DNA of 64,000 nt, taken from sequence record NC_061446.1. One strand, written 5' to 3'. Both the position numbers and the translations under genes were made by a program. Within the stretch, counting starts at the first letter, position 1. Every line of letters begins with the position of its first letter. Under the pieces are notes generated by a model that was not told the DNA's origin, made no database searches, and saw only the letters and a program-made list of their open reading frames with translations. Below are positions 5,327-31,856 of the stretch, one piece after another.

Positions 5327-5366
5327 GCTAATTTAGTAGAGTACAGTAATCACAAGGAACAAGATC

Positions 5367-12640: not shown

Positions 12641-13411
12641 ATGAGCAACGTTGATACAACAATGCCTGAAGGTAAGTGGGAGTTCAATGAGCCAGTTGCT
12701 GCTGTGTTTGATAACATGCTGCAAAACTCAATCCCGTCTTATGATCGTATGCGTGACCTGACGTATCGTTTAGGTCGTCAGTTCGTAACTCCTGGTACGG
12801 CTATCGTTGACTTGGGTGCAAGCCTAGGTCGTGCGATTGAGCCGTTCTGCAAAGAGTTCGGTCCGTACAACTATCATCACTGCCCGCACTCCGATGACGC
12901 AGATAGCGAAACAGGCAATCATTACAGCCTGTATGAGATCGCTCCTGCCATGCGCGAACGCCTGATGACTAACGACGTGTTGGTTGCTGCTGGCGCCAAG
13001 CTGGAGCGTGACTCTCTGACTGACGTTGATACGTTCCGCTTTGATGGACAAGTCGAATGCTCGTTGATTCTGTCTGTGCTCACTCTCCAGTTTACGCCGA
13101 TTGAACATCGTCAGCACATTCTGGAAAAAGTGTACGACAGCCTGGAGAAAGGCGGCGCGTTCATCCTCGTTGAGAAAGTACTCGGTGACGATAACTTCCT
13201 CGACCGTCTTCTGGTAAGCACGTACTATCAGATGAAAGGCGATAACGGTTACTCGCAGGAAAGCATTGCGACGAAACGTAAGTCACTTGAAGGCGTACTC
13301 GTTCCTGTGAAAGCCTCATGGAACGAAGAACTGCTGCGTAAAGCTGGCTTCGACCGCGTAGAGTGCTTCTACCGTGACCTGAACTTCGCAGGCTGGATTG
13401 CAATCAAGTAA
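12641..13411 (+). CDS. cmoA: carboxy-S-adenosyl-L-methionine synthase (CmoA family)
   Basis: WEFNEPVAAVFDNMLQNSIPSY, DLGASLG, LTLQF, GGAFILVEK, NGYSQESIATKRKSLE; Arg at 13277-13279 aligns with E. coli CmoA Arg199. Confidence 0.88.
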   Translation: MSNVDTTMPEGKWEFNEPVAAVFDNMLQNSIPSYDRMRDLTYRLGRQFVTPGTAIVDLGASLGRAIEPFCKEFGPYNYHHCPHSDDADSETGNHYSLYEIAPAMRERLMTNDVLVAAGAKLERDSLTDVDTFRFDGQVECSLILSVLTLQFTPIEHRQHILEKVYDSLEKGGAFILVEKVLGDDNFLDRLLVSTYYQMKGDNGYSQESIATKRKSLEGVLVPVKASWNEELLRKAGFDRVECFYRDLNFAGWIAIK

Positions 13412-13415
13412 CCGT

Positions 13416-13444
13416 GTGGGGTGGCTTCGGCTGCCCACTGCTTT
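13416..13444 (+). terminator. UUCG hairpin with weak U-tract between cmoA and the ligase gene
   Basis: GTGGGGTGGC-TTCG-GCTGCCCAC then TGCTTT. Confidence 0.45.
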
Positions 13445-13457
13445 TGAGGGAACAACC

Positions 13458-14324
13458 ATGGCTAATGTACGCCAAGAACGCTGCGCACGAATGATACGCG
13501 AGTCACTAATCGCAGAAATAAAAAAGGCTCGCTCTAAACGTCCTTACGTCTTCCTCAGTGGCGGCGTAGACTCAAACTGTATTCTGTTTGCTGCACTGGC
13601 TGCTGGTTGCAAGCCAATCACACTGAGCTTCCACATGGAAGGCGTTAACAGTCGTGACTTCCGTGCTGCACAGGCTATCGCTCAGGAGTTTAACCTTGAG
13701 CTGATTGAAGTCGTTCTTCCTAACAGCTATGAGAAGTTGAAGAAAGATGTGCTGCTCATGGCAGAGCGCTACGCCTGCATTCAGAAGAACGAATTTGAAT
13801 GTTCATGGCCAATGCTCTACAGCTTCTTCCATGTTCGCAACCACGCTGCGGAGAATGGCATCAAGAATCCTGTGACGTTTACCGGACAGGGCGCTGACCT
13901 GATGTATCTCAGTAGCAAGAAGGCGAGCATTCACTATAAAGATCGTCCAGACGAATGGCGCAAAGAGGGTCGCGCTAATCCGCATCGCACTCAGGGTCGC
14001 ATCTTACCTGTTATGGCGCGTGATGCTGGTGTGCGTAACATCAAGCCGTGGGATAGCGAAGAAATCCTGCAGGCGTTTCTCGGCACAAGCTGGGAAGACG
14101 TTAACAAGCCTCGTCAGAAAGAGCCGTCGCGCATGGCTTTCGAAGAAGACTTCCAACGTATTCGCGTGTACAACCATCAGAACTTCCAACTCGGTGATAC
14201 CGGAATCGCAGAGCATTTCGAAAAGCTGCTGGCGGACCCTGAGATGAATCCTGATCTTAAATACAAAAGCGTCGTCGGTGTTTACGGTGAGCTTGCCCGT
14301 AAGTACCAGGGAATTGAGTCATGA
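13458..14324 (+). CDS. asparagine-synthase-like ATP-dependent amide ligase (PP-loop domain only)
   Basis: LSGGVDS PP-loop, FTGQGADLMY; no N-terminal Ntn glutaminase domain; GAGG RBS before ATG 13458. Confidence 0.8.
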   Translation: MANVRQERCARMIRESLIAEIKKARSKRPYVFLSGGVDSNCILFAALAAGCKPITLSFHMEGVNSRDFRAAQAIAQEFNLELIEVVLPNSYEKLKKDVLLMAERYACIQKNEFECSWPMLYSFFHVRNHAAENGIKNPVTFTGQGADLMYLSSKKASIHYKDRPDEWRKEGRANPHRTQGRILPVMARDAGVRNIKPWDSEEILQAFLGTSWEDVNKPRQKEPSRMAFEEDFQRIRVYNHQNFQLGDTGIAEHFEKLLADPEMNPDLKYKSVVGVYGELARKYQGIES

Positions 14325-14932
14325 TTCATATCATTGATGGTGGCGTTGGTTGTGATTACGTTTCTGAAAAGTTGCGTGAAGCTGGAATCAATTGCCGTAC
14401 TCATGCGCCCAACAACCCACGCGTTCGCGCTGCATACGCACCTTATGCCTCGCTGTCCATGGGCTTTAGCGTAGAAGAAATTGAGAAGCATATCGGTAAC
14501 GTGCTTGGCACATATCGCGGTCTGTTTCTGATTAGCAGTTACATCGGCTCGCTGGTAGCGCGTAACATGATTGACCAATGCGGCCAAAGCCATAACATCA
14601 TTTACTGCGATGACTTCAAGTGCGGTTCTCTGCCTGTCGTTGCTTCTTCTATTTCTGTAAACACCTATAAGAAGCAACGGCAACTCGGACGTATTGCTGG
14701 ACGTCTCAAACACTTTGACTTTGACCACGAATTTATTATTGCTGACAAGGCAGTGCGATTTGCGGCAGGCTCGGAGTTTGATGAACATGAAGCGCGTAGC
14801 GAACTGAACAACCATGCGAAGTTCCTGTCGAGTCCGTCCATGATTGTTGCAGCACACAAACTCGGTGTGCGTAGCAGCATGTATCATAACTATGCAGGGC
14901 TGGTGAAAGAGTTCATTGAGAATCGCCAGTAG
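14321..14932 (+). CDS. hypothetical protein coupled to the ligase
   Basis: ATGA overlap; N-terminus IHIIDGGVG. Confidence 0.75.
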   Translation: MIHIIDGGVGCDYVSEKLREAGINCRTHAPNNPRVRAAYAPYASLSMGFSVEEIEKHIGNVLGTYRGLFLISSYIGSLVARNMIDQCGQSHNIIYCDDFKCGSLPVVASSISVNTYKKQRQLGRIAGRLKHFDFDHEFIIADKAVRFAAGSEFDEHEARSELNNHAKFLSSPSMIVAAHKLGVRSSMYHNYAGLVKEFIENRQ

Positions 14933-14950
14933 CAGTAACGAGAGGGCACG

Positions 14951-15214
14951 ATGATTAATCGCTTTCAGTTAAAACGAGCTCCAGTGATTGAAGCCTGTCA
15001 GTGGAACGGAGAGAACGTTGAGGAGATGAATCAGTTTCTCAACGGCGGTGGTTACGTTGTAGGTCGTTATGTCCAGATTGGTGTGACGGACAAACAGGGT
15101 AACCCAACTCTGGCTAACGTAGCAGTAGGCAACTACGCAGTGAAAGACGAAGACGGCAAGTACGGCGCAATCACCGCATCAGAGTTGATGGATCTTTACG
15201 TACTGGCGGATTGA
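14951..15214 (+). CDS. small conserved phage protein (PVIEAxQW...GNYAVK, PGDYG-like family)
   Basis: Motif pattern resembles the widespread KPVVIEAVQW...GDYIIK phage family. Confidence 0.6.
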   Translation: MINRFQLKRAPVIEACQWNGENVEEMNQFLNGGGYVVGRYVQIGVTDKQGNPTLANVAVGNYAVKDEDGKYGAITASELMDLYVLAD

Positions 15215-15221
15215 GGAACAC

Positions 15222-15677
15222 ATGAATCTTTTCTCTATTTTAAAACAGCAAGTGAAGAAAGCGCTGTCTACCGAAGCGAACCACGAACCAGAAATTCGTG
15301 CTTTGTTTGACTGGCGTTACTCAGTTGAAATCAAAGGCCAGATGTATATCGTCGGTAAGACAGGAGCGAACACCTGCTTCTATATCGAGCCGGGGACGTC
15401 TGAGCCTATCGCCTGCTATCCCGATGCGTTACTGGAGAAGATCGACCAGTGGGGTTCAGGCAAGTACGTGTCGTATGCTATCTACTTCAAACGCTTCGAA
15501 AGCCCCGTTGCTGAGAACATCAAAAGTCTCGAAAAGGCAATGACAGGCAAGCCGAAGACGTTTAAGAAAGGTTACTTCATCTGTGGCGTTACGCCGAAAG
15601 GCAAGCGCGTCAAGCTCTATCGTCTGCAACAGGGATTGAGCGGAATGCAGTGGGTAGCAGTGGAGCCTAAAAAGTAA
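15222..15677 (+). CDS. hypothetical protein
   Basis: GAGGA RBS; 151 aa. Confidence 0.75.
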   Translation: MNLFSILKQQVKKALSTEANHEPEIRALFDWRYSVEIKGQMYIVGKTGANTCFYIEPGTSEPIACYPDALLEKIDQWGSGKYVSYAIYFKRFESPVAENIKSLEKAMTGKPKTFKKGYFICGVTPKGKRVKLYRLQQGLSGMQWVAVEPKK

Positions 15678-15705
15678 TCACGGACTGTCCGTGTGAGGAG
15701 CAAGT

Positions 15706-15999
15706 ATGATTAGTGACATTACAGTCGGCCATATCTATAAGTCACCTAGTGACAGACCATTTATTGTTGACTGCATTGCTGCGCACGGACAGGATTGCTC
15801 TCTACCTATGGTCGTCTATCGTAATCTTGAAAAGACGTTAGACAAACCGGCAGGTACCGTATGGGTAATCCCTGAGTCGTTGTTCACAATGCAGTTCTCT
15901 GAGTATGAATGTGGAGAACATCATGAACACAACGAACTTGTATCAGCATCTGGCGTCAAGGGGGTTCGATCCTTCTTTTTATCATTGCTGGGTGAGTGA
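15706..15999 (+). CDS. DUF1653-like protein
   Basis: GHIYK...FIVDCIA...MVVYRNL pattern; GAGGAG RBS. Confidence 0.6.
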   Translation: MISDITVGHIYKSPSDRPFIVDCIAAHGQDCSLPMVVYRNLEKTLDKPAGTVWVIPESLFTMQFSEYECGEHHEHNELVSASGVKGVRSFFLSLLGE

Positions 16000-16439
16000 A
16001 ACACAAATGACCGTACCTCTGTTTGCGTTTGACAGAGCGATGCGTGGTCTACAGGTCTACACACCAGATGCACCAAAGCACGACGCTAACCCGAAAGCGT
16101 GTCGTTACTTTACGCGAGCATTCGGCGGCAAGCAGTTGGTGTGGGGATCGGAAATTAAACCTGAACGGGTCGACCGTATTCTTAACTGAGTCTGTGTTCA
16201 AGGCATGTGCATTGCATCGTCTTGGACTTAACGCTTGGTCCGTTCTTGGCTCTGATGTTAGTGACCATCTTTATCGTCAGTTGTGTCTTCTTGGTCTTCG
16301 GTTCGTTTGTCTCGGCGATAACGATCCGGCAGGGCAGAAGTTTAGTCAGACGTTTGGGCTAGGCGCTGTCAGTCGTGACCTTGATGAATTGACTGACGAG
16401 GAACTTCTCGACCTAACTCTACCATTCGTAAGGAAGTAA
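15923..16439 (+). pseudogene. small TOPRIM/primase-like gene split by a +1 frameshift near 16153
   Basis: Frame A (MNTTNLYQHLASRG...KQLVWGSE) continues in frame B (LNLNGSTVFLTESVFKA...GDNDPAG) carrying the TOPRIM Glu and DxD. Confidence 0.65.
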
Positions 16440-16440
16440 A

Positions 16441-16875
16441 ATGGAAAACAAACATAAGATCATCATCCGCATCTTAGGTGATGTAGGCAGCGGTAAGTCT
16501 GCTGCATACTGTCGTATTGCTGCGATGCTGAAAGACAGCGGTGCGACTGTTGTTCATGCTGACGAGAAAGCGTGGAACATGTTGCAGAATGCAGGTGAAG
16601 CCGACCGCGCTCAGGAAGACCTGTATACCTTCTCTCCGCAGATCACTCTCGAAGAAGCCTGCATTCGCTCTGATGCAACTCTGTCGAAAAATCAGATCAT
16701 GCAGTATTTCGCATACGCCCATCTGCCTCAACATCTGCAACGTGTTAGCAAGCCGTTCGCACTGCTGGCGCAAGAGATGGATCAGTATCTGCCTGACGGC
16801 GCTGAAAAGTCTGCGGGTCTGCGTAAACTTCTCGAAGCGAAAGACTGCGCTGTCCGTGCGTTAGTCGCAAAATGA
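16441..16875 (+). CDS. Walker-A-like N-terminus fused to an Acb2/Tad1-like helical hairpin
   Basis: GDVGSGKS; C-terminal FAYAHLP...LPDGAEKSAGLRKLLEAKDCAVRA. Confidence 0.6.
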   Translation: MENKHKIIIRILGDVGSGKSAAYCRIAAMLKDSGATVVHADEKAWNMLQNAGEADRAQEDLYTFSPQITLEEACIRSDATLSKNQIMQYFAYAHLPQHLQRVSKPFALLAQEMDQYLPDGAEKSAGLRKLLEAKDCAVRALVAK

Positions 16876-17000
16876 TCGTACTGTGCTTTCGCTGTCTCAA
16901 AACATACGACATTCTGAAAGCACCTTTGACCAAGACCAAACGGCTGCGCGTCAAAGAGCCAGAGTGTCCTCATTGTGGGTGTAGGGTTTACTTCTCATAA
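16872..17000 (+). CDS. 42-aa zinc-ribbon protein (not in ORF track)
   Basis: ATGA-coupled; MIVLCFRC...ECPHCGCRVYFS. Confidence 0.65.
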   Translation: MIVLCFRCLKTYDILKAPLTKTKRLRVKEPECPHCGCRVYFS

Positions 17001-17010
17001 GGAGGCAATC

Positions 17011-17037
17011 ATGAACGATTGGTTCTACGACTGGTAA
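17011..17037 (+). CDS. micro-ORF MNDWFYDW
   Basis: AAGGAGG RBS 5 nt upstream, TAA TAA double stop, terminator immediately after. Confidence 0.45.
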   Translation: MNDWFYDW

Positions 17038-17043
17038 TAACTC

Positions 17044-17070
17044 AAAGGGTGGCCTAATGGCTGCCCTTTT
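17044..17070 (+). terminator. rho-independent terminator
   Basis: AAAGGGTGGCC-TAAT-GGCTGCCCTTTT. Confidence 0.8.
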
Positions 17071-17192
17071 CTGATCTTAGACAAGTAAAATAAGCCATTA
17101 GGGGTAGCGAATAACCATGCGTAAGGCATATAAAACCATGTGTAGGCAGCGTAGAAACACCACCTTTTTCTTGAGCAGTGGGAAGCGCTTAA

Positions 17193-17202
17193 AATCTGTA
17201 AA
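17193..17202 (+). promoter_or_regulatory. AATCTGTAAA motif
   Basis: Intergenic, 41 nt before ATG 17244. Confidence 0.6.
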
Positions 17203-17243
17203 TATAGCTCAGATACCAATAACTGCTTCTGAGAAGAATAAAA

Positions 17244-17648
17244 ATGAGACCTGAGACTATTGCTCGTACATATAAAGTCCCAAGCCAAACTTTGGAGTCC
17301 GTCCACAACATCTGTGAACGTCAAGGCGTAAAACTGTCCGACGTTGTTCGTCGCTATGTTCAATTCGTCGTTCGCACTCGCGGTGAGTTTCTGCGTTCCG
17401 CGCCTCGTCCTGAGTCGGCTCAGCTTAACGTGCGTATGCCTTTTGATTTAGCTCATTCGTTTAGTCATGTATGTAAGCAAGCAGGTTCTGGTACCAGCAC
17501 AACAATGGTCACTTTCCTGAATGAAATAGTTCAGCTTAATCATATTCCTGAGGAACTCCTTCAGGAGACCGAAGAAGATGTGCGTGAGTATATCCGCAAA
17601 GAACGTGCTCGCCTTGACCTACTGGAAGCTCAATTCGGAAAACAATAA
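17244..17648 (+). CDS. tandem ribbon-helix-helix-like DNA-binding protein
   Basis: Two beta-alpha-alpha-like units: RTYKVP...LSDVVRRYV and QLNVRMP...TMVTFL. Confidence 0.55.
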   Translation: MRPETIARTYKVPSQTLESVHNICERQGVKLSDVVRRYVQFVVRTRGEFLRSAPRPESAQLNVRMPFDLAHSFSHVCKQAGSGTSTTMVTFLNEIVQLNHIPEELLQETEEDVREYIRKERARLDLLEAQFGKQ

Positions 17649-18490
17649 TGACAGTAATAAGTCCAATCCGCTACCAGGGAAATAAGCGAAGTCTTATCCC
17701 TCTCATTCTGGAGCACACACCTTCTGTGCAAGACTGTCCACGTATGGTCGATGTGTTCGGCGGTAGCGCTACTGTGTGCGCGAACATGCCTCAGAAGTTT
17801 CGTGTCTACAACGAACTGAGTCCGCAGGTATTTGAAATCGTCAAGATGCTTGTCGAACAAGACCCGAAGAAAACATTGGGCCAAGTTAAGCGTCTGGTAA
17901 AACATTGGTGCCTGACAAACAGTAACGAAGAAAACTACGATGCGTTCCGTGAAGTTGTCCAGAAGAAGCGCACGGCTATTCTGCATTACGTTGCGCACCG
18001 ACACGCCCACTCGAACATGCTGCGCTTTAATCAGCAGGGCATATACAATGTTGGCTTTGGTGATCGTGGTCTGATTGGCAAGTTCGATGAACTGGAGCAA
18101 GAACTCACTACGTTTCATAGTCACATGCAGGGCGTCCACCTGACGAACATGAAGTACGGTAAGCTGTTGAGCCGTCTCGGTCGCCAATTGAACTCCAACA
18201 CGTTCTGTTACTTCGACCCGCCTTATCTTGCCTCAGGTGCTATGCAGTATGGCAAGTGGACGGAAGCAAACGAACGCAATCTACTCGCAACGCTTGAGCA
18301 ACTGAATCGTTTAGGCGTGCCGTGGATGTTGAGCAACGTTACTGAACATCGACACTTCTCAAACGACTTGTTGAAGCGTTGGCTAAAGAAACATGCAACG
18401 ACTGTGCTCTACCCAAACAAAAGCTATGCGATGAACAACGGCCAGAGTGGTTCGCATAGCACCGTTGAAATTCTGGCAATGAACTACTGA
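17648..18490 (+). CDS. dam: DNA adenine methyltransferase (Dam/D12 class)
   Basis: SPIRYQGNK, DVFGGSATV, YFDPPY. Confidence 0.88.
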   Translation: MTVISPIRYQGNKRSLIPLILEHTPSVQDCPRMVDVFGGSATVCANMPQKFRVYNELSPQVFEIVKMLVEQDPKKTLGQVKRLVKHWCLTNSNEENYDAFREVVQKKRTAILHYVAHRHAHSNMLRFNQQGIYNVGFGDRGLIGKFDELEQELTTFHSHMQGVHLTNMKYGKLLSRLGRQLNSNTFCYFDPPYLASGAMQYGKWTEANERNLLATLEQLNRLGVPWMLSNVTEHRHFSNDLLKRWLKKHATTVLYPNKSYAMNNGQSGSHSTVEILAMNY

Positions 18491-18497
18491 GGTAATC

Positions 18498-18806
18498 ATG
18501 GCACCACCAGTCGGTACAAACATGAAGTTGTGGAGTATTCTCGGCTCAATCGTTCGTGAGCTTGAGAAGATTAACGCCACTGCTTGGTACTTGTCGAAAG
18601 ACCCGAAAGATACCTGCGGCGTTATTTGCTGCGCTATCCCTGACTACACGGACGCCACTCTAATCAAAGAGATTGAGATGCGTGTCGGTCAGATTGAAGA
18701 ACGCAAACGCTACATCGCTGGTCTGCAAAACGGTGAAGCTGGCCATACCTTTGCCTGCGAGCAACGTGCCGACGAACTCTACCAGAAGTATTGTGGTAAG
18801 CGTTAA
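18498..18806 (+). CDS. hypothetical protein
   Basis: GAGG RBS. Confidence 0.7.
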   Translation: MAPPVGTNMKLWSILGSIVRELEKINATAWYLSKDPKDTCGVICCAIPDYTDATLIKEIEMRVGQIEERKRYIAGLQNGEAGHTFACEQRADELYQKYCGKR

Positions 18807-18814
18807 TCTGTAAA
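18805..18814 (+). promoter_or_regulatory. AATCTGTAAA motif
   Basis: At gene boundary, 46 nt before ATG 18861. Confidence 0.6.
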
Positions 18815-18860
18815 ACAATAACATAACAACCTTTTGACTACACACTGCAAGGATATAAAA

Positions 18861-19442
18861 ATGAAAGAGTTCCTGTCTAAGTATTTCGATCTTGAGGAGT
18901 ACGACCGTTGGCCGCTCGCTCTGCTTTTCGTTGGAGCTGTGTTCGCAATCGCAAGTGACTTCCTGTTTGCCTACGATGCAGTCTGGCCGATGTTCGTCGT
19001 CTTCGCGCTGTATACCGTAGCGGTCATTCTCGATGTACGCAACATCATGGAGTCAGGCAACACCGCACCGTCGTGGGGCTGGCTGTTGTTCATTCCTGTT
19101 TATCTGTGGAGGCGCGACACTCTTACGCAAAAGAAGAATCGCAACATCTTCTATGTGTGGATGATTCTGTGCATTCTCTCATTCGGCAGTAGTTATCTCG
19201 CAATGAACCGCGATAACCACGAGCTGGTGGAACAGGATGTGTGTCGTGTGCTCGATACGATTGACGCTCTGCAATCCAACAACATCACCTGCGTTCGTGC
19301 GTACAACATGAAAGAGCAGTATGACGGGTACTGGAAGGGTAGTGCCCATTTGTCCAACAACCGCGACGTTAATGTAAGCGCTGATTACAACAAAGATAAA
19401 GACAGCGTGTACGTTCAAATTCATAGCCTGTTAGGAGAGTAA
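18861..19442 (+). CDS. membrane protein (3-4 TM helices plus soluble C-terminal domain)
   Basis: Hydrophobic segments WPLALLFVGAVFAIA, WPMFVVFALYTVAVIL, IFYVWMILCILSF; AAGGA RBS. Confidence 0.75.
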   Translation: MKEFLSKYFDLEEYDRWPLALLFVGAVFAIASDFLFAYDAVWPMFVVFALYTVAVILDVRNIMESGNTAPSWGWLLFIPVYLWRRDTLTQKKNRNIFYVWMILCILSFGSSYLAMNRDNHELVEQDVCRVLDTIDALQSNNITCVRAYNMKEQYDGYWKGSAHLSNNRDVNVSADYNKDKDSVYVQIHSLLGE

Positions 19443-19443
19443 C

Positions 19444-20142
19444 GTGGAGCAAGAACAAAATCCCCTCGATATGCCTGTTCATATCGTTAACGGTTTTCAA
19501 TTCCGAGAAGAATCTGCAAAGCTGATGGCTTATGCGCTGGACATGAAACGTCTTGGTGCTAACATCGACGCGAACTTCTGGGACACTCGCATTCTCGACG
19601 ACGATCAGAATATTGACATGATTCAGCGCCTGTCTACTACTGGTCCTGTGATTAATCGTCGTAACTTCGACCTGTTCGAATCGGCTGACCGTTGCCGCCG
19701 AAATGCCGCCGTTGTGTTCGAAGCGCTTATCTACGGCTTTGACCTGATGATGCAGGAATTCCGTGAATCGTTCCTCGCGGATGAAGGTGTCTCTCCTTGG
19801 ATTGACCGCCACGACACTAACATGTTCAGTCGTGAGCTGTTGCAATATCTCACTCGTCCGGCAGAAGAATCTGATCTACTCGATCTGCCTACGTATCGTC
19901 GTCAAGCGGCCGTCCTGTGTGACGTTGAGCCTGTGCTGCTTACGCTGCGTGTGCATAACGAAATCCAGTACGTCTGGAACGGCGAGTGGCGGGCGCTGAC
20001 GAACGCTCCGATCGAAACACGCCGTCGTCAATGCGTTAACTGGTATTACAACCACGCATTCACAATCCATCGTCTGCGCCACATGCTGTCGCGCTACCTG
20101 TATCACAAATTTCCTGAGCAGTTCGGAGGCAAAAGTGCGTAA
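19444..20142 (+). CDS. hypothetical protein
   Basis: AGGAG RBS, GTG start; 232 aa. Confidence 0.75.
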   Translation: MEQEQNPLDMPVHIVNGFQFREESAKLMAYALDMKRLGANIDANFWDTRILDDDQNIDMIQRLSTTGPVINRRNFDLFESADRCRRNAAVVFEALIYGFDLMMQEFRESFLADEGVSPWIDRHDTNMFSRELLQYLTRPAEESDLLDLPTYRRQAAVLCDVEPVLLTLRVHNEIQYVWNGEWRALTNAPIETRRRQCVNWYYNHAFTIHRLRHMLSRYLYHKFPEQFGGKSA

Positions 20143-21824: not shown

Positions 21825-21849
21825 GACCAATAACTGAGAGGCTCTCAAC

Positions 21850-22566: not shown

Positions 22567-22576
22567 GGTAACAGCA

Positions 22577-23198: not shown

Positions 23199-23201
23199 TT
23201 C

Positions 23202-23224
23202 ATGGGGCCTAGTGCCCCATTTTT
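23202..23224 (+). terminator. rho-independent terminator
   Basis: ATGGGGC-CTAGT-GCCCCAT-TTTT. Confidence 0.8.
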
Positions 23225-23227
23225 CGT

Positions 23228-23770: not shown

Positions 23771-24408
23771 TCATGTTGATTGATGCGTTGAAAGCAATCC
23801 CTGCGATTATACTCTGCTACATAGTGTGGCGCTATTTTCTAAACAAGCGTGACCATGATCGTCATCTGATTAAGGCGCAAGAGCAATACAATCGTGGCCG
23901 CCTCGATCGAGGTAACGCCTGGATTCATTTGAAAACGGGCCGTTCTTATACCGTTCTTTGGTTGACCAACACTGGTACGTCTAAGGCAGGATGGGAAATC
24001 AACGTCGTATACACGCACGACTTCCAGCAAATCTATAGCCGCCCGTTCAGTGAGTTCTGCCATAAGTTTCATCATATCAGTCGCGGCGAAAACGAACAGC
24101 CTTTCGAAACTATGCTGATGACCGAGCAGATGCTTAACAATACCGAAATACGTCTTCCTAAAGAAGGTGAGATTTGGTTTGAAGGTACTGTACACGCGAC
24201 GCCTCCTGAACTTATCAAGCGCGGCCATCCACCTCAGGTTGTGTCTCAACGGCGCGCTCGTATTGATAGGGTACTTGGTGTCGGTGACGCACATCCAGTA
24301 GTCTTATTTACTGTAAATGAAAAGCAGACAGCAATGTTGCTTTCGCAATTCATTTTCATCTATCGCAAAGAGGTGTCCTTCGATGGAACAACCAGCTCTT
24401 GTGTTTAA
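23767..24408 (+). CDS. membrane-anchored protein with a DUF1653-like domain
   Basis: N-terminal TM; WIHLKTGRSYTV...VVY...YSRPFSEF. Confidence 0.6.
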   Translation: MIMLIDALKAIPAIILCYIVWRYFLNKRDHDRHLIKAQEQYNRGRLDRGNAWIHLKTGRSYTVLWLTNTGTSKAGWEINVVYTHDFQQIYSRPFSEFCHKFHHISRGENEQPFETMLMTEQMLNNTEIRLPKEGEIWFEGTVHATPPELIKRGHPPQVVSQRRARIDRVLGVGDAHPVVLFTVNEKQTAMLLSQFIFIYRKEVSFDGTTSSCV

Positions 24409-24730
24409 ATACGTGATGTTCGTCCGTACGCGCACCAAAGAGCGTGACGACGGCGTTTACTTGCCTGTGATATTCCCAACGCATATCATGCACTCTGATA
24501 TGTCGGACGAAATGCGCGGCTACGGTATGTCCAACGGTTTTCGAGAGAATCGCTATCACCAGCGTATCGATCCAATCTCGGCCGGCTTTATCAATCTGCG
24601 AACACTTCAATGTTTCGGTGAATCTGAATCTCTGGAACTGAAATCGCGTCCAGAAGACAGCACCATTATCGCAGAGTACATGAAGACTCAGGGTAAAGGT
24701 GCAGAAGCTCCGCCGGAGGATGATGAATAA
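24383..24730 (+). CDS. conserved phage hypothetical protein
   Basis: IFPTHIMH...SAGFI...GESESLELKSRPED pattern; GAGG RBS. Confidence 0.7.
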   Translation: MEQPALVFKYVMFVRTRTKERDDGVYLPVIFPTHIMHSDMSDEMRGYGMSNGFRENRYHQRIDPISAGFINLRTLQCFGESESLELKSRPEDSTIIAEYMKTQGKGAEAPPEDDE

Positions 24731-25218
24731 TGAACGTTCAGCAGAAGTCGAGAGACATTAGACGCAGCAAGCGTAAAGCTGTAATCAGCAAACAGCATGA
24801 GTTCCGTAATGCCTGTAATGAAATGCAGCCGCGTGTTCAGCAAGATCTGATTGATATTCTTGCTGAGTTTGTTCGGGCAGGCTCCGATAAAGACATGCTG
24901 GTGTTTAGACGCCCTGTGTACCGCATAGGTAAGTACAAGTTTCAGCTACAGGTTACTGTCAAATTCTTTGACACGCGCAACACGCAGTTCAACGTTGAGC
25001 TTGTATCTAAAGGCTTTACGACTCTGCTGGAGCAAAACGTTCGTCACCGTAGTTGGTTCCTGCCGGACACAGTTCTCGTCGAGCACAATATCTATCTCAG
25101 GGATATGATGTATCGTGCGCAACAGGCGGTGTTCACAGGTAAAGAGTGGGAATTGGAATACGATCCAAACATAAGTGTAGACGATTCCGTATTCACTCAC
25201 ATCTATCTCGTGGAGTAG
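24730..25218 (+). CDS. hypothetical protein
   Basis: TAATG coupling. Confidence 0.7.
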   Translation: MNVQQKSRDIRRSKRKAVISKQHEFRNACNEMQPRVQQDLIDILAEFVRAGSDKDMLVFRRPVYRIGKYKFQLQVTVKFFDTRNTQFNVELVSKGFTTLLEQNVRHRSWFLPDTVLVEHNIYLRDMMYRAQQAVFTGKEWELEYDPNISVDDSVFTHIYLVE

Positions 25219-25220
25219 TC

Positions 25221-25562
25221 ATGGACATTCTAAAATCAATCTGGGCTAGCCCTTTTTGGGACAGTCCTGCGTCTGCATTTGTGCCTACGACGCTTATCAT
25301 CTCATTCTTTATCTATACTGAATGGCGTGAGCGTCGTACTCTGCGTCTGTCTCGTAAGGCATTCGCAGACGGCTGGGATCCGAAGAAGAATGCGCTCTTC
25401 CGTCACAAGTGGTTTCCATTCATGACGTGTCGTGTGGACTTTTATTCGAATAGCCCGAATGACAAGTTCACGCCGTCAGTGTTTGTGCAAAGGAATGGTG
25501 GGCGTTATGTAGAGATGCCTGCCTGTGTGTTACGTTACCGCTATACTGAGATTAAACAATGA
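25221..25562 (+). CDS. membrane-anchored hypothetical protein
   Basis: GGAG RBS; TM FVPTTLIISFFIY. Confidence 0.65.
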   Translation: MDILKSIWASPFWDSPASAFVPTTLIISFFIYTEWRERRTLRLSRKAFADGWDPKKNALFRHKWFPFMTCRVDFYSNSPNDKFTPSVFVQRNGGRYVEMPACVLRYRYTEIKQ

Positions 25563-25900
25563 CACCAGCAATCCGCTTTAACGAGCAGACCTGCGATCTG
25601 CTGAAAAAGATCTTCGGCATCAACAAGCCCTTCTTTGTTGTGCGCCGAGACGTAATCATCGAAAACGATAAGCAGTTCGGTGAGCGTGTGTATCTGGCCA
25701 ACGGCACTCATGTCGTTACCGTGCCTAACGTTCAGGGCCTCGATCTCGGCGATAAGCTCTATCTCGCAGAAGACAGTGAGGTGTACGAGTGGCATCCTCA
25801 TTTCGACCGCCCCAAATATGAAGCGAGCAACAATCAAAAGGAAGCGCTCGCTTTTGGCTTTCACCCTATCGTCCATCATACAGACAGCCGGAACTCTTAA
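25559..25900 (+). CDS. hypothetical protein
   Basis: ATGA-coupled; TAATG-coupled to thyA. Confidence 0.7.
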   Translation: MTPAIRFNEQTCDLLKKIFGINKPFFVVRRDVIIENDKQFGERVYLANGTHVVTVPNVQGLDLGDKLYLAEDSEVYEWHPHFDRPKYEASNNQKEALAFGFHPIVHHTDSRNS

Positions 25901-27003
25901 TGAACAATCAACCTCTCGATCTGCGCGATCCCAACCAGTACGAACTGTATTCCCTGCACTGCGTGGATGAACAGTACATCAATCTCGGCAATGCTATTCT
26001 GATGCACGGTACTGACGAAACAGATCTCGGCCGTACCGAAGACACGTGGCGTACTCTGATTGGTATTGGCTTTCAGTTGACCAACACGCTGATCGCTTTC
26101 CCTGCGCTGCTGTCTGCACGTAAGAACTGGTTCGCTGCCGTTGATGAAATGTGCTGGATGGCGCGCGGTGAAACAAACATCGGCAGTCTCAATTCCAAAA
26201 TCTGGAACGAGTGGGCTGACGAAGACGGCGAATGCGGTCCTATCTACGGTCTGATGTGGCGTATGTGGCCTGATATCAAAACCTTCCCGACTATTGAGTC
26301 GATGAAGGCGCGTCAGATTAGCGATGCTGAGATCGAGCGCATCTCCAAAGAGATCAATCGCATGAAGGCTGCTGGCTACACTGAAACAGAAATGGCTGAT
26401 GGTCGTGTGTGCTACGAGGGTACGATCGACCAGTTCGCTGATGCTCTGCGTCAGGTAATGAATCGCAGTCGTTCACGTCGCATCCGCGTTCAGGCATACA
26501 ATCCGGCGTATCTCAACATGCAGGGTCTACCGCCATGTCACACTGAGTTTGAGTTCAATGTGACCAAGCCCACACTGTACGAAACGGCTCAGATGGAAGC
26601 ACGTCAGATGGCACCTGCCGAAGACTCGCTGCACATCACGGTGACAATGCGTTCCAACGACACACTTTTAGGGCGTCCGTTTAATATCATCGGCTACAGC
26701 GCCATGCACCAAATGATCGCGAAGTGGGCAGGCATGAACGTTGGCAGCTTTACGCTGAACACTACCAACACGCATCTGTACACTCACCACTTTGAAGCGT
26801 TCAAAAAGCAAAGTGAACAGTGGGCAGTTCTCGCAGACAACATGAAACGCACTGGCGAACCTGTTGTCTATCCTATGCTGGAAATCAGTGACGACATTCT
26901 TGGCCTGACGCCGGAAGAGTTGCTGGATAACGCCAACGCTGAATGGTTCCAGCTTCTCGATTATGCACCGGCACAGGCAGTCAAAGGACGGGTGACAAAG
27001 TGA
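25900..27003 (+). CDS. thyA: thymidylate synthase
   Basis: EMCWMARGETN, IWNEWAD..GECGPIYG, LPPCH, RSND.LLGRPFNI, HLYTHH. Confidence 0.92.
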   Translation: MNNQPLDLRDPNQYELYSLHCVDEQYINLGNAILMHGTDETDLGRTEDTWRTLIGIGFQLTNTLIAFPALLSARKNWFAAVDEMCWMARGETNIGSLNSKIWNEWADEDGECGPIYGLMWRMWPDIKTFPTIESMKARQISDAEIERISKEINRMKAAGYTETEMADGRVCYEGTIDQFADALRQVMNRSRSRRIRVQAYNPAYLNMQGLPPCHTEFEFNVTKPTLYETAQMEARQMAPAEDSLHITVTMRSNDTLLGRPFNIIGYSAMHQMIAKWAGMNVGSFTLNTTNTHLYTHHFEAFKKQSEQWAVLADNMKRTGEPVVYPMLEISDDILGLTPEELLDNANAEWFQLLDYAPAQAVKGRVTK

Positions 27004-27653
27004 ACAACAACATTCTTCTGATCAAGCGCGTTTCTTCTTACCTGTATGTAGGCTATTGCGAAAATGCAAGTGACATTCCCCGTCGTGGTGTTGAGATGCT
27101 GGACATTGTTGTGCCGAGCCCTGTAAGTGGTGACTCAGACAACATTCTCGATATGAAAGCGCGTTGCATCTATCATTTGCCACACAACTGTTTCCTGCTG
27201 CAACATGTAGATGGTGAGTTCGAGGGCAACGAATACCCGGCGTGGACGAAAAAGCATTGTCGGGATAACATGGAAATCTTCCAGCGTTCGTCTCATGGCC
27301 GTGAGCAGGCAGCGATTGAACTCATGCTGAATGAACTGCGTGATGCGGAAGTTGAGCATCCGGAATGGCCGGAAGAAGCAATTCATGCAGGCTCCATTCT
27401 CGTGGAAGAAGCGGGTGAGTTGCTGCGCGATTGCGTGTCCTTCGATGAAACAGGTGACGATAAGCTGATCGTTAATATGCAGATCGAAGCCGTACAGACA
27501 GGTGCAATGGCATTGCGCTTCCTGAAAAATCTGTCCACGTCGCAGAAGCGCACTATCCCGCATAATGCTCTGCGTACTATCTTAAACTCAGAGATGACTC
27601 CGGAAGAGCAACTGGCGGAGATGCGTCGTCTTATCGATCACGGAGTACGCTAA
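27000..27653 (+). CDS. protein with MazG-like helical NTP-pyrophosphatase domain
   Basis: HPEWPEEAIHAGSILVEEAGEL...EAVQTGAMALRF. Confidence 0.55.
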   Translation: MNNNILLIKRVSSYLYVGYCENASDIPRRGVEMLDIVVPSPVSGDSDNILDMKARCIYHLPHNCFLLQHVDGEFEGNEYPAWTKKHCRDNMEIFQRSSHGREQAAIELMLNELRDAEVEHPEWPEEAIHAGSILVEEAGELLRDCVSFDETGDDKLIVNMQIEAVQTGAMALRFLKNLSTSQKRTIPHNALRTILNSEMTPEEQLAEMRRLIDHGVR

Positions 27654-28585
27654 TGCGTTTACTAAAGTATATCCCAAGTGCAGGCATCACGCACACGCCA
27701 CCAGCCGGCGGTGAGTATGTTCGTGATATGGTAATCGACTTTGGCGATCATCCGAAGCCTGACGTAGGTCACCATGATGAACTCTGTCTGTTCGATCTGC
27801 GTCTGACCAATGTGGATGTGTATCACGAACAAGATAGCGTCCACATCTGCCTGCCTGACATGAGCCACATCTACGCCAACTTCGATATGGAGATCTGCCG
27901 CTCGCAGGAGTATCAGTTCTGGATGGGTGACAACGCTCATGCTCCTTCTGCTGATGCTATCGTTCACGCACATATCGTTAAAGGTCATCTTCCTAATCTG
28001 CACAAAGACTTCGATGCGTTTGTCGAATGGCTGTTTGATCGTATGCGTGAAATTCCTCGTCTCAACATCGATCACATGGTGCTGAAAGGCAAAGGTCAAA
28101 TGTACGATGCAAATACCAAAAACTCGTATGACCTTTGGGGCATGTTCCGCTACTGGTTGATGCTGGGTCGTAATCTGACTATCGGGTATTCGCTCGACAA
28201 TCAGATAACGCTCAACGATACACACATCTCTGAGAAGGGTGTGCGCTGGTGGTTGATTGAGCACAACAAACAACTGATGGAAGTCGCGCGTGAGAACGAT
28301 CTGCTGGCTGCATTCATCACGTTTGGCTCCGATAGCCCTGGCTCTGAGGACGAGTATGCGTATACGTTCGTTGGCAAAGACGGCAACTTCATGCGCAGCC
28401 ACGTAGACGTTAGCGAGTTCATGCACCTCGCTGTTCACGGCCACTTCCCTGAACTGGTCTGCGATTCGAGCGGCAAGAACTTCAACGTGACGTTTAACTT
28501 CGCGCAGTATTTCCCGGAAGAGTATCACGCGTACCAAAACTATCGCGGCGGTGATTACCATCGCGCTCTGTCTCGCTTCGTCTGA
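27653..28585 (+). CDS. hypothetical protein (310 aa)
   Basis: GGAG RBS, TAATG coupling. Confidence 0.75.
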   Translation: MRLLKYIPSAGITHTPPAGGEYVRDMVIDFGDHPKPDVGHHDELCLFDLRLTNVDVYHEQDSVHICLPDMSHIYANFDMEICRSQEYQFWMGDNAHAPSADAIVHAHIVKGHLPNLHKDFDAFVEWLFDRMREIPRLNIDHMVLKGKGQMYDANTKNSYDLWGMFRYWLMLGRNLTIGYSLDNQITLNDTHISEKGVRWWLIEHNKQLMEVARENDLLAAFITFGSDSPGSEDEYAYTFVGKDGNFMRSHVDVSEFMHLAVHGHFPELVCDSSGKNFNVTFNFAQYFPEEYHAYQNYRGGDYHRALSRFV

Positions 28586-28635
28586 CGGGCTTCGGCCTCC
28601 TGTCAGTAATTTGATTGTCTAACAGGAGAGCCGAC

Positions 28636-28971
28636 ATGAACTACGATCCAAAGAAAGATTTCCACCCGTTTCAATATCTGGGCGCACCTAAAGTCCCGCA
28701 CACAGGCTTCTTAGGTAATACAGTGAACTTGGTTGAGAACGACGTAAACATCGGCAGCGATGAATGCACGTTCGAGTTCACTGTAGCTCAGATGAACGCG
28801 ATGGACAGAGGTACTGTTACGTTCAGGGCGAAAGACTCTGGCGGTGGTATCGACATTAAGAAATGCTCAGTCTCAGGTTTGAAAATGGTAATTAAGCTGG
28901 ACAGAAGGGTGATCGAGTTCGGCAAAGTTCAAGTCGAATGGCAGACTACTCCTCGCCACTACTATTACTGA
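28636..28971 (+). CDS. hypothetical protein
   Basis: AGGAG RBS before ATG 28636. Confidence 0.7.
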   Translation: MNYDPKKDFHPFQYLGAPKVPHTGFLGNTVNLVENDVNIGSDECTFEFTVAQMNAMDRGTVTFRAKDSGGGIDIKKCSVSGLKMVIKLDRRVIEFGKVQVEWQTTPRHYYY

Positions 28972-28980
28972 ATCTGTAAA
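28971..28980 (+). promoter_or_regulatory. AATCTGTAAA motif upstream of the ParB-like/MTase pair
   Basis: 34 nt before ATG 29015. Confidence 0.6.
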
Positions 28981-29014
28981 GACAGAGAAAGAGCAACCGA
29001 TAAGAGATACGACA

Positions 29015-29725
29015 ATGGCAAAAACTGCTATCAAAACAAAGGACGGAAAGAAGAAAAAGAATGATGGGCTAAAGTTCGAGTTGAATAAACTCAGCTCCGT
29101 CAATCAATTAAAAGGCGCAGCGTATAACCCGCGTTTCATTACAGACAGTCGCCTGAAAGCACTCGAAGGTTCTTTGGGTAGCTTCGGCGACTTGTCTGGT
29201 ATCGTGTTCAACAACAACATCAAATCTGGTGTGTTGATCTCAGGCCACCAGCGCTTGAAGTCAATCGAAGGCTGGAAGACTCGTATCGAGGTCCAGAAGT
29301 CTGTTGATAAGCACGGCACTATCGGCCTGGGTTATATTCACGCAACGCATCCGAAGAAGTCTGATAAGGTGATCAGCATTCCTCTGCGTATCGTGAACTG
29401 GACCGATAAGAAAGCAGAGTACGCTGCAAACATCGCGGCGAACGCCCACGGAGGTGAGTTCGATAACAAGAAACTCGCCAAGCTGGTTGAGCAACTCGAC
29501 CTCAACACAATCAAGCCGCAGTTGCTTGGCCTTGACCCGTTAGAGATTCGCGGTCTGCAAGCCAAGCTGAAAGTTCAGGCTGTTGTTCAGGACGAGAAAC
29601 GTGCTGGCAAGACAACTGGCCAGATGAACGGCAGTACCGGTAAGTTCAATGAGTACAACCCTGATGATGTGGGTGAAGCTCTGAACTGCACCTGCCCGCG
29701 TTGTGGATTCAAGTTCGAGGGATAA
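29015..29725 (+). CDS. ParB/Srx-like N-terminal domain protein with C-terminal zinc knuckle
   Basis: YNPRFIT, LISGHQRLKSI, terminal CTCPRCGFKF. Confidence 0.8.
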   Translation: MAKTAIKTKDGKKKKNDGLKFELNKLSSVNQLKGAAYNPRFITDSRLKALEGSLGSFGDLSGIVFNNNIKSGVLISGHQRLKSIEGWKTRIEVQKSVDKHGTIGLGYIHATHPKKSDKVISIPLRIVNWTDKKAEYAANIAANAHGGEFDNKKLAKLVEQLDLNTIKPQLLGLDPLEIRGLQAKLKVQAVVQDEKRAGKTTGQMNGSTGKFNEYNPDDVGEALNCTCPRCGFKFEG

Positions 29726-29726
29726 T

Positions 29727-31856
29727 ATGATCATCAAGCCGCCTACGATGAAGGAAATCAACAAGCTGGATAAACCCTGGCGTGGTATGAGTTTCTTCGC
29801 AGGTTGCGGTGGGTCTTCGACCGGTCACAAGATGGCCGGTATCGACATTGTGTTGAGCAACGAGTTTGTTGACTCAGCACGAGAGTCCTACGAAGCGAAC
29901 CATCCGACAACTAAAGTGCTGCCTCATGACATTCGCCGCTTAGACCCAGGCAAGCTGTTGCGCTTCGCTGGTCTGAACAAAGGCGAACTGGATTTACTTG
30001 ACGGTAGTCCTCCTTGCTTCACCGAAGACACGATCATTCATACAGCAGACGGCATGAAGTTCATTTCGGACATGAACGTCGGCGATAGAGCAATGACCAG
30101 TGTCGGGCAGTATCATCCCGTGTACGACACGATGGTGCGACCTTACGTCGGCACGATGCACAAAATCGAAACACTGATCAGCAGCAACAAAGCAACGCCC
30201 GAGCATCCGTTCTTTATCAGACGTCCACTTGAGGCGGGTGGCTTCTCTGATCCGTTCTGGTGCGATGCGAAAGACGTGCAGGAAGGTGATCTACTCGGTA
30301 CACCTCGTGTTACACCTGACCAGCCTGCTGATGTGTACCACAATCAGATGAATCAATTGCCGAAGATGATTCGTCAGTGGGTAAGCATTCCTGAGTTCTG
30401 GTGGATGGTAGGTCACTGGTGTGATCGTGGTTCAATCGAAACTATCGGTGGCATTGAAGCAGTTAGCTTCGAGTCGCATACCAGTATTGAAAACGCGATG
30501 ATTGAGCAGGCGTTTGACGCGCTTAAACTCAGCAGCCTGAATCGCATCGAAACAATGACAGCGCAACGTAGAACGTTCCGTACTGTTATTGATGTTGAGC
30601 TGGTGCAGTTTCTGCGCCGCTTTATCAGTCACGGCAACAACACGTTCTCTCGTCGTCTGCCTGCCATGTTGTTCCACATCAACGCGGAACTGAAACAGCA
30701 ATTCATTCTGGGCTGTGCTGGCATGGATTATGTGACTGCTATGGGCACGGGCATTGCTATCACTTCTGCAAGCAGGCGCTTCCTGCTTGAACTGAATTAC
30801 CTGTGCTGCTCTGCATTCAATCGTCCTTTGTTTGACGGATTGACTTGGGGCGACCTGTATTTCGGTAGTTCGTTAACGCCTCGTGAACGTAACAGTGCGC
30901 GTGAGCATATCGGCTACCTGTTCTTGCAGGACGAGCACAACTTCTTCCATGAGTTCAGCAAAGAAGACTCGCATCTCTGGACAGAAGTGATTGAGAACCT
31001 AGCGTATCAAGCAACCTGTGACGTCTATAACTTCTCTGTTGAAGTGGACGAGACGTATGTGGCGAACGGTGTTGTTGTTCACAACTGCAAAGGCTTCTCT
31101 ACTGCTGGCGTGAAAGAAGAAGGCTGGGGCAAAGAAGTTAAGTACAGCGATAACAAGTATCAGCAGGTTGATGACCTGTTCGATCAGTATTGTCGTATGT
31201 TGAAAGGCATGATGCCGAAAGTGTTCACTGCGGAAAACGTTAGCGGTCTTGTTAAGGGTGCCTCGAAAGGTTACTTCCTTGAGATCATGCGAACGTTTGA
31301 CGAGATTGGCTATTACGTCCGAGCGCCGCTGCTTAATGCTGCATGGCTTGGTGTGCCTCAGTCCCGTGAACGTATCATCTTTATGGGTGTACGCAAAGAC
31401 GTAGCACACGCTCTCGGTTATAAGAGCAATCAGGCTGCTGTGCCTGACGTAGTGCCATGCGATACAATGGCCTTCCTTGCAGACGCACTGCCTCACATTC
31501 AGCGATATAAGTCCACGAAGAAGGATATCATCACGTATCTTCCTGCGATGAACGGACCGATGCCGACAATCACTGCGGCTGATGCTATAGCGTATGAGAC
31601 GGCGCGATTCTCGTCTGCTGGGTTCGTTGAAGACAACAAAGGTCATCGTCGTAAGTTAACCATCGACGAACTGAAAGTTGTTTCCGGCCTGCCGTCAGAC
31701 TATAAGCTGAAAGGCAAGTTTGAAGAACAGTGGGAGCGCCTAGGTCGTATCTGTGTTCCGGCAATGACACAGGCTGCATCGAAAGCTCTTATCGAACATG
31801 TCCTGCTGCCTTATGCTAAGAAGCGTAAGAAGAAGCCTGGCGAAATCTTTAAGTAA
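29727..31856 (+). CDS. C5 cytosine DNA methyltransferase-family enzyme with intein; predicted carboxymethyltransferase
   Basis: Motif I FFAGCGG, IV GSPP/CKGFS (split by intein), VI ENV, VIII QSRER, X LGRICVP (Arg at 31746-31748 instead of Asn). Confidence 0.85.
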   Translation: MIIKPPTMKEINKLDKPWRGMSFFAGCGGSSTGHKMAGIDIVLSNEFVDSARESYEANHPTTKVLPHDIRRLDPGKLLRFAGLNKGELDLLDGSPPCFTEDTIIHTADGMKFISDMNVGDRAMTSVGQYHPVYDTMVRPYVGTMHKIETLISSNKATPEHPFFIRRPLEAGGFSDPFWCDAKDVQEGDLLGTPRVTPDQPADVYHNQMNQLPKMIRQWVSIPEFWWMVGHWCDRGSIETIGGIEAVSFESHTSIENAMIEQAFDALKLSSLNRIETMTAQRRTFRTVIDVELVQFLRRFISHGNNTFSRRLPAMLFHINAELKQQFILGCAGMDYVTAMGTGIAITSASRRFLLELNYLCCSAFNRPLFDGLTWGDLYFGSSLTPRERNSAREHIGYLFLQDEHNFFHEFSKEDSHLWTEVIENLAYQATCDVYNFSVEVDETYVANGVVVHNCKGFSTAGVKEEGWGKEVKYSDNKYQQVDDLFDQYCRMLKGMMPKVFTAENVSGLVKGASKGYFLEIMRTFDEIGYYVRAPLLNAAWLGVPQSRERIIFMGVRKDVAHALGYKSNQAAVPDVVPCDTMAFLADALPHIQRYKSTKKDIITYLPAMNGPMPTITAADAIAYETARFSSAGFVEDNKGHRRKLTIDELKVVSGLPSDYKLKGKFEEQWERLGRICVPAMTQAASKALIEHVLLPYAKKRKKKPGEIFK
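30015..31085 (+). mobile_element. intein (357 aa) at the MTase catalytic PC motif; degenerate LAGLIDADG remnants
   Basis: Starts CFTEDT, block B ATPEHP, ends YNFSVE...VVHN; +1 residue is the catalytic Cys. Confidence 0.93.

Follow-up and report, generated by a model that had tools for sequence, protein, structure and literature searches.

The 64,000-nucleotide (nt) stretch of DNA analysed here, hereafter the window, comes from record NC_061446.1 (MZ443778.1), the 259,771-bp genome of Erwinia phage pEa_SNUABM_30, an Alexandravirus jumbo phage whose host is Erwinia amylovora; window coordinates are record coordinates, and the ~20-kb region of interest is 100% identical to the record. On its plus strand lie two groups of genes that together likely encode a two-locus, post-replicative cytosine-hypermodifying pathway: a cmoA homologue (gp017), an adjoining gene for a predicted ATP-dependent amide ligase (gp018) and a gene coupled to it (gp019), and, 14.7 kb away, a parB-like gene (gp047) next to a gene for a C5-cytosine methyltransferase (C5-MTase) fold that contains an intein (gp048, cmoX). 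All five are sited where a preliminary description of this DNA, made from the letters alone, had placed them. RefSeq labels gp017 a 'tRNA methyltransferase' and gp047 a 'ParB-like partition protein', and calls gp018, gp019 and gp048 'hypothetical'. About 27 genes separate the two loci, among them those for a Dam-type methyltransferase, a deoxycytidine monophosphate (dCMP) deaminase and a thymidylate-synthase homologue; promoter and terminator scans of both loci give counts not above those of shuffled sequence.

The first gene, gp017 (12641..13411, +), encodes a CmoA homologue and predicted synthase of carboxy-S-adenosylmethionine (carboxy-SAM, Cx-SAM). The protein matches the E. coli CmoA structure 4gek (expectation value, E, 1e-29), the TIGR00740 model and phrog_4752 (E 8e-80), and is 30% identical to SpCmoA, which is experimentally active. 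Arg213 of gp017 (nt 13277-13279) aligns to EcCmoA Arg199 (chain position 213 of 4gek minus a 14-residue tag), and with the structure and model matches this bears out the CmoA with an Arg199 equivalent at 13277 that had been described. On this homology we predict with high confidence that gp017 makes Cx-SAM. The further statement that the window lacks cmoB agrees with what we find: none is annotated, and none is present among the ~30 proteins scanned, a set that does not extend to the minus-strand block at 43-64 kb. Between pEa_SNUABM_30 and its relative phB78 the cmoA protein is 90% identical, and the ligase, gp019, the ParB-like protein and the CmoX C-extein are 99-100% identical, which suggests a separate recombination event inside cmoA.

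The ligase gene begins 47 nt downstream of cmoA. Its start is likely the ATG at 13458, where a ribosome-binding site is present, and not the TTG at 13398, which gives a predicted CmoY-type ATP-dependent amide ligase of 288 amino acids (aa; 13458..14324, +). The match to PF00733 (Asn_synthase, E 4.8e-9) covers residues 45-254 of the longer open reading frame (ORF) and confirms the PP-loop Asn-synthase-like gene reported beside cmoA; a QueC PP-loop model also matches (E 2.2e-5), and there is weak likeness to the PP-loop enzymes NadE and LarE. The protein consists of the PP-loop Asn-synthase domain only, without an N-terminal glutaminase domain, and all aligned family members share its PP-loop residues Ser34, Gly36 and Asp38. 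Against the glycine ligase SpCmoY it shows 35% identity (E 6e-38). Searched by sequence against solved structures, the best match is a beta-lactam synthetase at only E 0.43, so that no template points to a particular amine. Homology, adjacency to cmoA and co-occurrence with the other genes of the system make it reasonably probable that the ligase amidates 5-carboxymethylcytosine (5cxmC); glycine is the sole precedent for the amine it might attach.

The second locus ends with cmoX. The gp048 precursor (29727..31856, +, with 29727 the annotated start) is a 709-aa protein with a C5-MTase fold, and was searched as the whole precursor and as separate pieces, the exteins never being joined. It matches PF00145 (E 6.4e-38), and its best match in the PDB is SpCmoX (8YF3, E 2.9e-55), ~39 orders of magnitude ahead of the next, the HaeIII methyltransferase (E 2.9e-16); M.MpeI (4dkj) is a weak match (E 8.4e-5). 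The N-extein (residues 1-96; 29727..30014, +) runs from the cofactor-binding motifs to the Ser-Pro-Pro of motif IV and aligns to SpCmoX residues 22-99, while the C-extein (residues 454-709; 31086..31856, +) begins with the catalytic Cys and holds motifs VI and VIII, a short target-recognition region and motif X. The motif-X string quoted in the preliminary description is present, with Arg674 at nt 31746-31748, and its claim of an Arg-variant motif X therefore stands. Arg674 aligns to Arg350 of SpCmoX in 8YF3 (numbering checked against Cys98), and the position is invariant in seven relatives, PaBG and S-B43. SpCmoX and PaBG also have, at the aligned positions, the motif VI Glu and the motif VIII Arg, which contact the cytosine, and motif IV is intact. 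The target-recognition region does not align with that of SpCmoX, and GC specificity is therefore not to be assumed. Given the Arg signature and the closest structure, gp048 probably writes 5cxmC.

The intein occupies 357 aa (residues 97-453; 30015..31085, +) and is matched by Hint_2, Intein_splicing, PT-HINT and TIGR01443, the last at 23.6 bits against a cutoff of 15.6, the Pfam Hint families falling below their gathering scores. All features of a class 1 intein are present, namely Cys1, the block-B Thr-x-x-His, a C-terminal His-Asn and a Cys at +1. The +1 splice residue is the catalytic motif-IV Cys itself (Cys454), and Ser-Pro-Pro ends the N-extein, so that splicing is needed to complete the active-site loop (the SPPC motif; S95-C98 in SpCmoX); the unspliced protein reads SPPC there too, with Cys1 of the intein as the last letter. 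All 51 Erwinia, Dickeya and Yersinia records (48, 2 and 1, respectively) have the intein, always at this site, whereas the CmoX of PaBG has no intein and an uninterrupted junction. Across four alleles of the intein, the central ~220 aa yield no endonuclease domain (LAGLIDADG, HNH or other), which bears on mobility and not on splicing.

This arrangement bears on whether the pathway could halt at 5cxmC, or be inactive in pEa_SNUABM_30, either because the intein splices poorly or because the ligase does not act on DNA. In favour of such a halt, the intein does cut motif IV in two just before the catalytic Cys, and it has neither an endonuclease domain nor a Pfam Hint match above the gathering cutoff. 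Yet the gp048 ORF is intact, and in seven relatives Cys1, the block-B Thr and His, the His-Asn and the +1 Cys are invariant even though the inteins are down to 36-38% identical, the signature of selection for splicing, while the exteins remain 74-97% identical. Such a halt is on these grounds improbable, and the invariant residues give us strong confidence that the intein would splice and restore motif IV. The preliminary description went further and proposed that the intein gates the system, a suggestion that does not hold beyond conjecture: gating of CmoX is possible but not indicated. The same site is used in a canonical Asn-type C5-MTase of Escherichia phage A4 (Asteriusvirus; excerpt positions 1270-3168), where a distantly related intein (21-23% identity) likewise has the motif-IV Cys at +1, so that this site looks like a recurrent intein target in jumbo-phage C5-MTases and not like a feature of the pathway.

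The parB-like gene, gp047 (29015..29725, +), lies 1 nt upstream of cmoX, as it does in every relative examined, and encodes a diverged, putatively ParB-N-like protein whose C terminus is a tail rich in Cys (CxC...CPxC). It matches phrog_620 (E 5.7e-32), has no Pfam match of its own even at E≤1 and, by sequence, no PDB match at E≤10. Seven of 35 relatives match PF02195 weakly (best 5e-4); the family comprises 183 clusters at E≤0.001, and none of the 120 listed carries a precomputed Pfam domain. An AlphaFold2 model has a predicted local distance difference test score (pLDDT) of 77 and in Foldseek retrieves ParB-CDP (6sdk; E 3.7e-4, probability 1.00, template modelling (TM) score 0.33-0.39), ParB-CTPγS and Noc (7ol9), the top matches having probabilities of 0.99-1.00 and TM scores of only 0.3-0.4. 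A role as a DNA-engaging helper is plausible. A ParB-like gene does adjoin the C5-MTase gene, as had been noted; as a novelty the partnership falls away, an association with ParB having already been reported in PMC12783734.

That paper (Yang et al., Nat Commun, Dec 2025, PMC12783734) demonstrates the pathway in Synechococcus phage S-B43, the cyanophage CmoA/CmoX/CmoY system to which the preliminary description had correctly pointed. There, CmoA makes Cx-SAM; CmoX, a C5-MTase homologue in which Arg350 replaces the motif-X Asn, writes 5cxmC at GC sites; and CmoY, which is homologous to Asn synthetase and has no glutaminase domain, attaches glycine, the product being 5gcxmC. Wild-type SpCmoX used Cx-SAM only, and an R350N mutant used neither cofactor. 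The authors listed 5,615 candidate CmoX sequences, often on the same contig as CmoA, an AMP-forming ligase and a ParBc-domain protein, noted ligase clusters with differing pocket residues, and made no mention of Erwinia, jumbo phages or inteins (PMC12783734). The S-B43 coordinates used here agree with the source data of that paper. The core chemistry, ParB link included, is thus not new, having been published in 2025; what is new here is that an intein is fixed at the catalytic Cys, that the genes lie in two loci yet are strictly coupled in their phyletic distribution, and that the ligase cassette has been exchanged among near relatives. The central proposal of the preliminary description, that CmoA supplies Cx-SAM, an Arg-variant C5-MTase writes 5cxmC and a PP-loop ligase amidates it, matches the characterised system, to which all three proteins are specifically related.

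Carried over to pEa_SNUABM_30, the pathway would run as follows. Host prephenate and SAM would be converted by gp017 to carboxy-SAM, and gp048 would be translated as an inactive precursor with its class 1 intein directly before the catalytic cysteine; protein splicing would then join Ser-Pro-Pro to Cys and yield a CmoX-type enzyme, the motif-X Arg of which would select carboxy-SAM and place 5-carboxymethylcytosine on phage DNA at a short motif. The carboxylate of 5cxmC would next be adenylated by gp018 and joined to an amine, our default guess being glycine or some other small amino acid, and gp047 would probably aid CmoX in engaging DNA. The likely benefit is protection from host restriction. 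The homologies, key residues, intein anatomy, co-occurrence and cassette swap are present in the sequences; it is from these that we infer each of the enzymatic activities, the amine, the target motif, the role of the ParB-like protein and the protective function.

Several observations weigh against so direct a transfer. The TIGR00740 match of gp017 (E 1.6e-40) scores 139 bits, under the 193-bit equivalog cutoff, because an insertion of ~70 aa relative to E. coli CmoA (residues ~67-138) splits the match, and the insertion is itself a departure from the characterised enzyme. The ligase is only 33-35% identical to SpCmoY, and E 6e-38 is weaker than the 1e-56 similarity-network threshold of the paper; the amine is therefore not transferable by homology. 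The evidence for splicing of the intein consists of conserved residues, and the ParB-like label of gp047 derives from a PHROG match and from fold matches of low TM score to a predicted model. The papers searched on Alexandravirus, AD1, Y3 and PaBG contain no chemical or sequencing-signal evidence of modified DNA for any phage of the lineage.

The phyletic distribution of the genes bears more directly on whether the two loci belong together. Searches with tblastn for CmoA, the ligase, the ParB-like protein and the CmoX C-extein, each on its own, return the same records (48 Erwinia, 2 Dickeya, both of AD1, 1 Yersinia, fHe-Yen9-02, and 2 PaBG), so that all four genes occur together in 53 records of the jumbo-phage lineage. 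None of the four is found in the syntenic Dickeya phages JA11, JA13 and JA29 (Salmondvirus), which keep the backbone: the macro-domain gene (49-51% identity), the gp015 homologue, the primase, the thymidylate-synthase homologue (54%) and gp044. JA11 (MH389777.1 2936-25000) is without cmoA, the ligase, gp019-gp021, gp045-gp046, the ParB-like gene, cmoX, gp050 and gp051, and on its gene content is a natural comparator without the system. The same presence/absence pattern was tabulated, uninterpreted, by Day et al. 2018 (PMC6143709 Table 5). In PaBG the order is contiguous, parB-cmoX-cmoA-x-ligase, where x is an additional gene. Joint presence and absence across a gap of 14.7 kb is good evidence for one functional unit. 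The co-occurrence of five genes that had been predicted holds for these four and fails for gp019, which is missing from Snuvirus, Yoloswag and PaBG.

These data also speak against a function in RNA or metabolism, in which CmoA would boost the 5-oxyacetyluridine (cmo5U) modification of host tRNA through host CmoB, or drain SAM, while gp048 would be an ordinary 5-methylcytosine (5mC) methyltransferase, with a small molecule or RNA as the substrate of the ligase. The RefSeq label of gp017, the weak resemblance of gp018 to QueC, NadE and LarE, and the 15 kb between cmoA and cmoX would all be at home in such a scheme, and SAM depletion was raised as a possible side effect in PMC12783734 itself. Motif X of gp048 has, however, Arg and not Asn, and among solved structures the protein is closest to SpCmoX, which is specific for Cx-SAM; the annotation of the window and the scanned proteins yield no cmoB; and the four genes come and go as a set, contiguous in PaBG. 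We consider this explanation very improbable, and retain the cytosine-hypermodifying pathway. Outside the lineage, CmoA, ligase or CmoX-like genes are seen in Salmonella phage Sen-NF, Staphylococcus phages (vB-SscS-F1 and SPbeta-like), Aeromonas phage HJ05, Moraxella phage Mcat8 and ~32 Flavobacterium phage records.

Within the lineage, the ligase gene behaves differently from the genes on either side of it. A blastn comparison with AD1 shows that DNA similarity stops at the cmoA stop codon (13411) and restarts at the gp019 start (14327), delimiting a swapped cassette (13412..14326, +) that comprises an intergenic hairpin and the ligase gene; in place of this segment, AD1-type relatives carry a DUF1611 gene and another type of ligase. 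Classed by identity to gp018, the ligases of the 53 records fall into type A (84-100%; 11 records, including SNUABM_30, phB78, SNUABM_39/2/35/36 and SNUABM_5), a Yersinia class (53%; the single record fHe-Yen9-02), a PaBG class (42%; two records), type C (34-35%; five records, including Y3, SNUABM_52 and Yoloswag) and type B (24-25%; 34 records, including AD1, Alexandra and most of the remainder). The types number at least three and are mutually 24-35% identical, and types A and B are each ~34-35% identical to SpCmoY and only 24% identical to each other. AD1 is the closest relative in backbone, with flanking proteins 73-86% identical, and yet its ligase is 24% identical; conversely, in Rivsvirus SNUABM_5 the flanking genes are 27-53% identical and the ligase 84%. 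As judged from these comparisons, the ligase gene is an exchanged cassette, its classes discordant with phylogeny.

The high identity of the type-A ligase in Rivsvirus despite such diverged flanks implies that the ligase is under strong constraint, and this speaks against the second way in which the pathway might halt at 5cxmC, a type-A ligase that does not act on DNA, to which its sharp unlikeness to the characterised ligase could otherwise be taken to point. The replaced segment also differs in its accessory genes: a DUF1611 protein is encoded in AD1 and Snuvirus, with an extra 420-aa protein of unknown function in Snuvirus, and a 2OG-Fe(II) oxygenase in Y3 and Yoloswag, while SNUABM_30 has no extra gene. 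Small unannotated genes lie by the ligase in fHe-Yen9-02 (190 aa, excerpt positions 4834-5406) and in PaBG (150 aa, 4533-4985; no Pfam match), and make the ligase slot more variable still. The SNUABM_30 cassette also contains, between the cmoA and ligase genes, a GC-rich hairpin (13419-13436, +) that has a 4-nt loop and is trailed by a T-rich stretch; it could be a partial terminator or an RNA-stability element.

The pattern of swaps is as would be expected if the adduct diversifies and the handle does not. Tentatively, and with rather less than even confidence, we suggest that specificity resides in a hot-swappable module between cmoA and gp019, in which type A (SNUABM_30), type B with DUF1611 (AD1, Alexandra, Snuvirus) and type C with the 2OG oxygenase (Y3, Yoloswag) attach or tailor different amines. 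If this is true, near-identical jumbo phages would carry chemically different amides of 5-carboxymethylcytosine, at least one of them a base so far undescribed, and would present a natural polymorphism of a hypermodified cytosine with host restriction as its driver.

The gene downstream of the ligase, gp019 (14321..14932, +), encodes a 203-aa orphan and is translationally coupled, its start overlapping the ligase stop by 4 nt. It has no Pfam, NCBIfam or PHROG match; a profile search of 1.84 billion representative proteins returns only five clusters, all of the same lineage, and an AlphaFold2 model built on a 13-sequence alignment is unusable (pLDDT 43). In AD1 the protein is 84% identical despite the ligase swap, and gp019 is therefore part of the conserved flank and not of the cassette. 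One could take gp019 for a fifth functional component that supplies or tailors the amine, for instance, in view of the stop/start overlap, of its position directly 3' of the ligase in 40 records whichever the ligase type, and of its absence from JA11 along with the other genes of the system. JA11 also lacks the unrelated neighbours gp020 and gp021, however, so that this co-absence is not specific; gp019 is absent from Snuvirus (at least nine records), Yoloswag, PaBG and S-B43, all of which have CmoA, CmoX and a ligase; and it has neither a detectable domain nor a confident fold. PaBG does have a gene of the same size (203 aa) downstream of its ligase, with no detectable relation to gp019. A functional part in the pathway is accordingly unlikely, and gp019 is probably a lineage-restricted orphan, going by its distribution, and not a core component; of the earlier claim of a coupled gene the coupling is real, and membership of the core is unsupported.

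Set beside S-B43, the pEa_SNUABM_30 system has the same three enzyme families, an SPPC-type motif IV, Arg in the place of R350, a ligase devoid of a glutaminase domain and a cmoA gene adjoining the ligase gene; an association with ParB-domain proteins is likewise reported in PMC12783734. It differs in that identities are only 30-35% (CmoA and ligase) and 34-47% (CmoX exteins), in the 357-aa intein at the CmoX catalytic Cys, in the distribution of the genes over two loci, and in its setting, a ~260-kb jumbo phage of an enterobacterial plant pathogen. PaBG (Baikalvirus), in which the cluster is annotated and unstudied, has the same four families, 42-50% identical, on a related jumbo-phage backbone; its cluster, unlike that of SNUABM_30, is contiguous, encodes a CmoX without intein, has the additional 150-aa gene separating cmoA from the ligase gene, and is followed by another, different gene of 203 aa. 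Engineered M.MpeI N374K, as cited in PMC12783734, offers a parallel: in it too the motif-X Asn has given way to a basic residue, which enables the C5-MTase fold to transfer the carboxymethyl group of Cx-SAM; as described in that paper, it is a single-site variant of a bacterial CpG methylase, whereas gp048 is a natural phage enzyme with Arg, another target-recognition region and an intein. The hypermodification systems based on 5-hydroxymethylcytosine and 5-hydroxymethyluridine (5hmC/5hmU), with which PMC12783734 draws a contrast, likewise install a handle at pyrimidine C5 and then decorate it, the decoration varying between related phages; in those systems the handle, a hydroxyl, arises at the nucleotide level through thymidylate-synthase-like enzymes, and here it would be a carboxylate placed on polymerised DNA by an enzyme of the methyltransferase fold.

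Chemical proof of the carboxymethylcytosine pathway exists for a single cyanophage, and the ~50 sequenced, cultivable jumbo phages of plant pathogens form a comparative series on the same CmoA/CmoX/ParB backbone, with at least three ligase types and different accessory enzymes, that includes system-free relatives (the JA11 group) and an intein-less, contiguous version (PaBG). A side-by-side comparison of their DNA would reveal the amines that are joined in nature to the carboxyl group, and whether the adduct depends on the type of ligase, the prize being ligase types that specify different, and possibly new, cytosine amides. For the use of Erwinia and Dickeya phages in biocontrol, these findings imply that the phage DNA is probably modified, which affects restriction mapping, sequencing chemistry and the interpretation of host range.

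Some other genes of the window deserve mention. Between the two loci, gp026 (17648-18490, +) encodes a Dam-family N6-adenine methyltransferase (TIGR00571, E 8.7e-31), through which pEa_SNUABM_30 probably also carries adenine methylation. The thymidylate-synthase homologue gp043 (25900-27003, +) has insertions that make it ~100 aa longer than ThyA and is followed by two conserved genes of unknown function, gp044 (27000-27653) and gp045 (27653-28585). It keeps the catalytic Cys and the Asn typical of enzymes acting on deoxyuridine monophosphate (dUMP), its best matches are ordinary ThyA, and by these features it looks like an ordinary ThyA relative with insertions; the idea that it replaces C or T wholesale, and so removes the substrate of CmoX, is unsupported given these residues and matches. 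The terminase large subunit, gp004 (2495-5326, +), is unusually long at 943 aa and has a weak Intein_splicing match over residues 227-406 (E 7e-5), suggesting that it probably holds a second intein of the window; terminase inteins in this phage group are mentioned in the PaBG paper.

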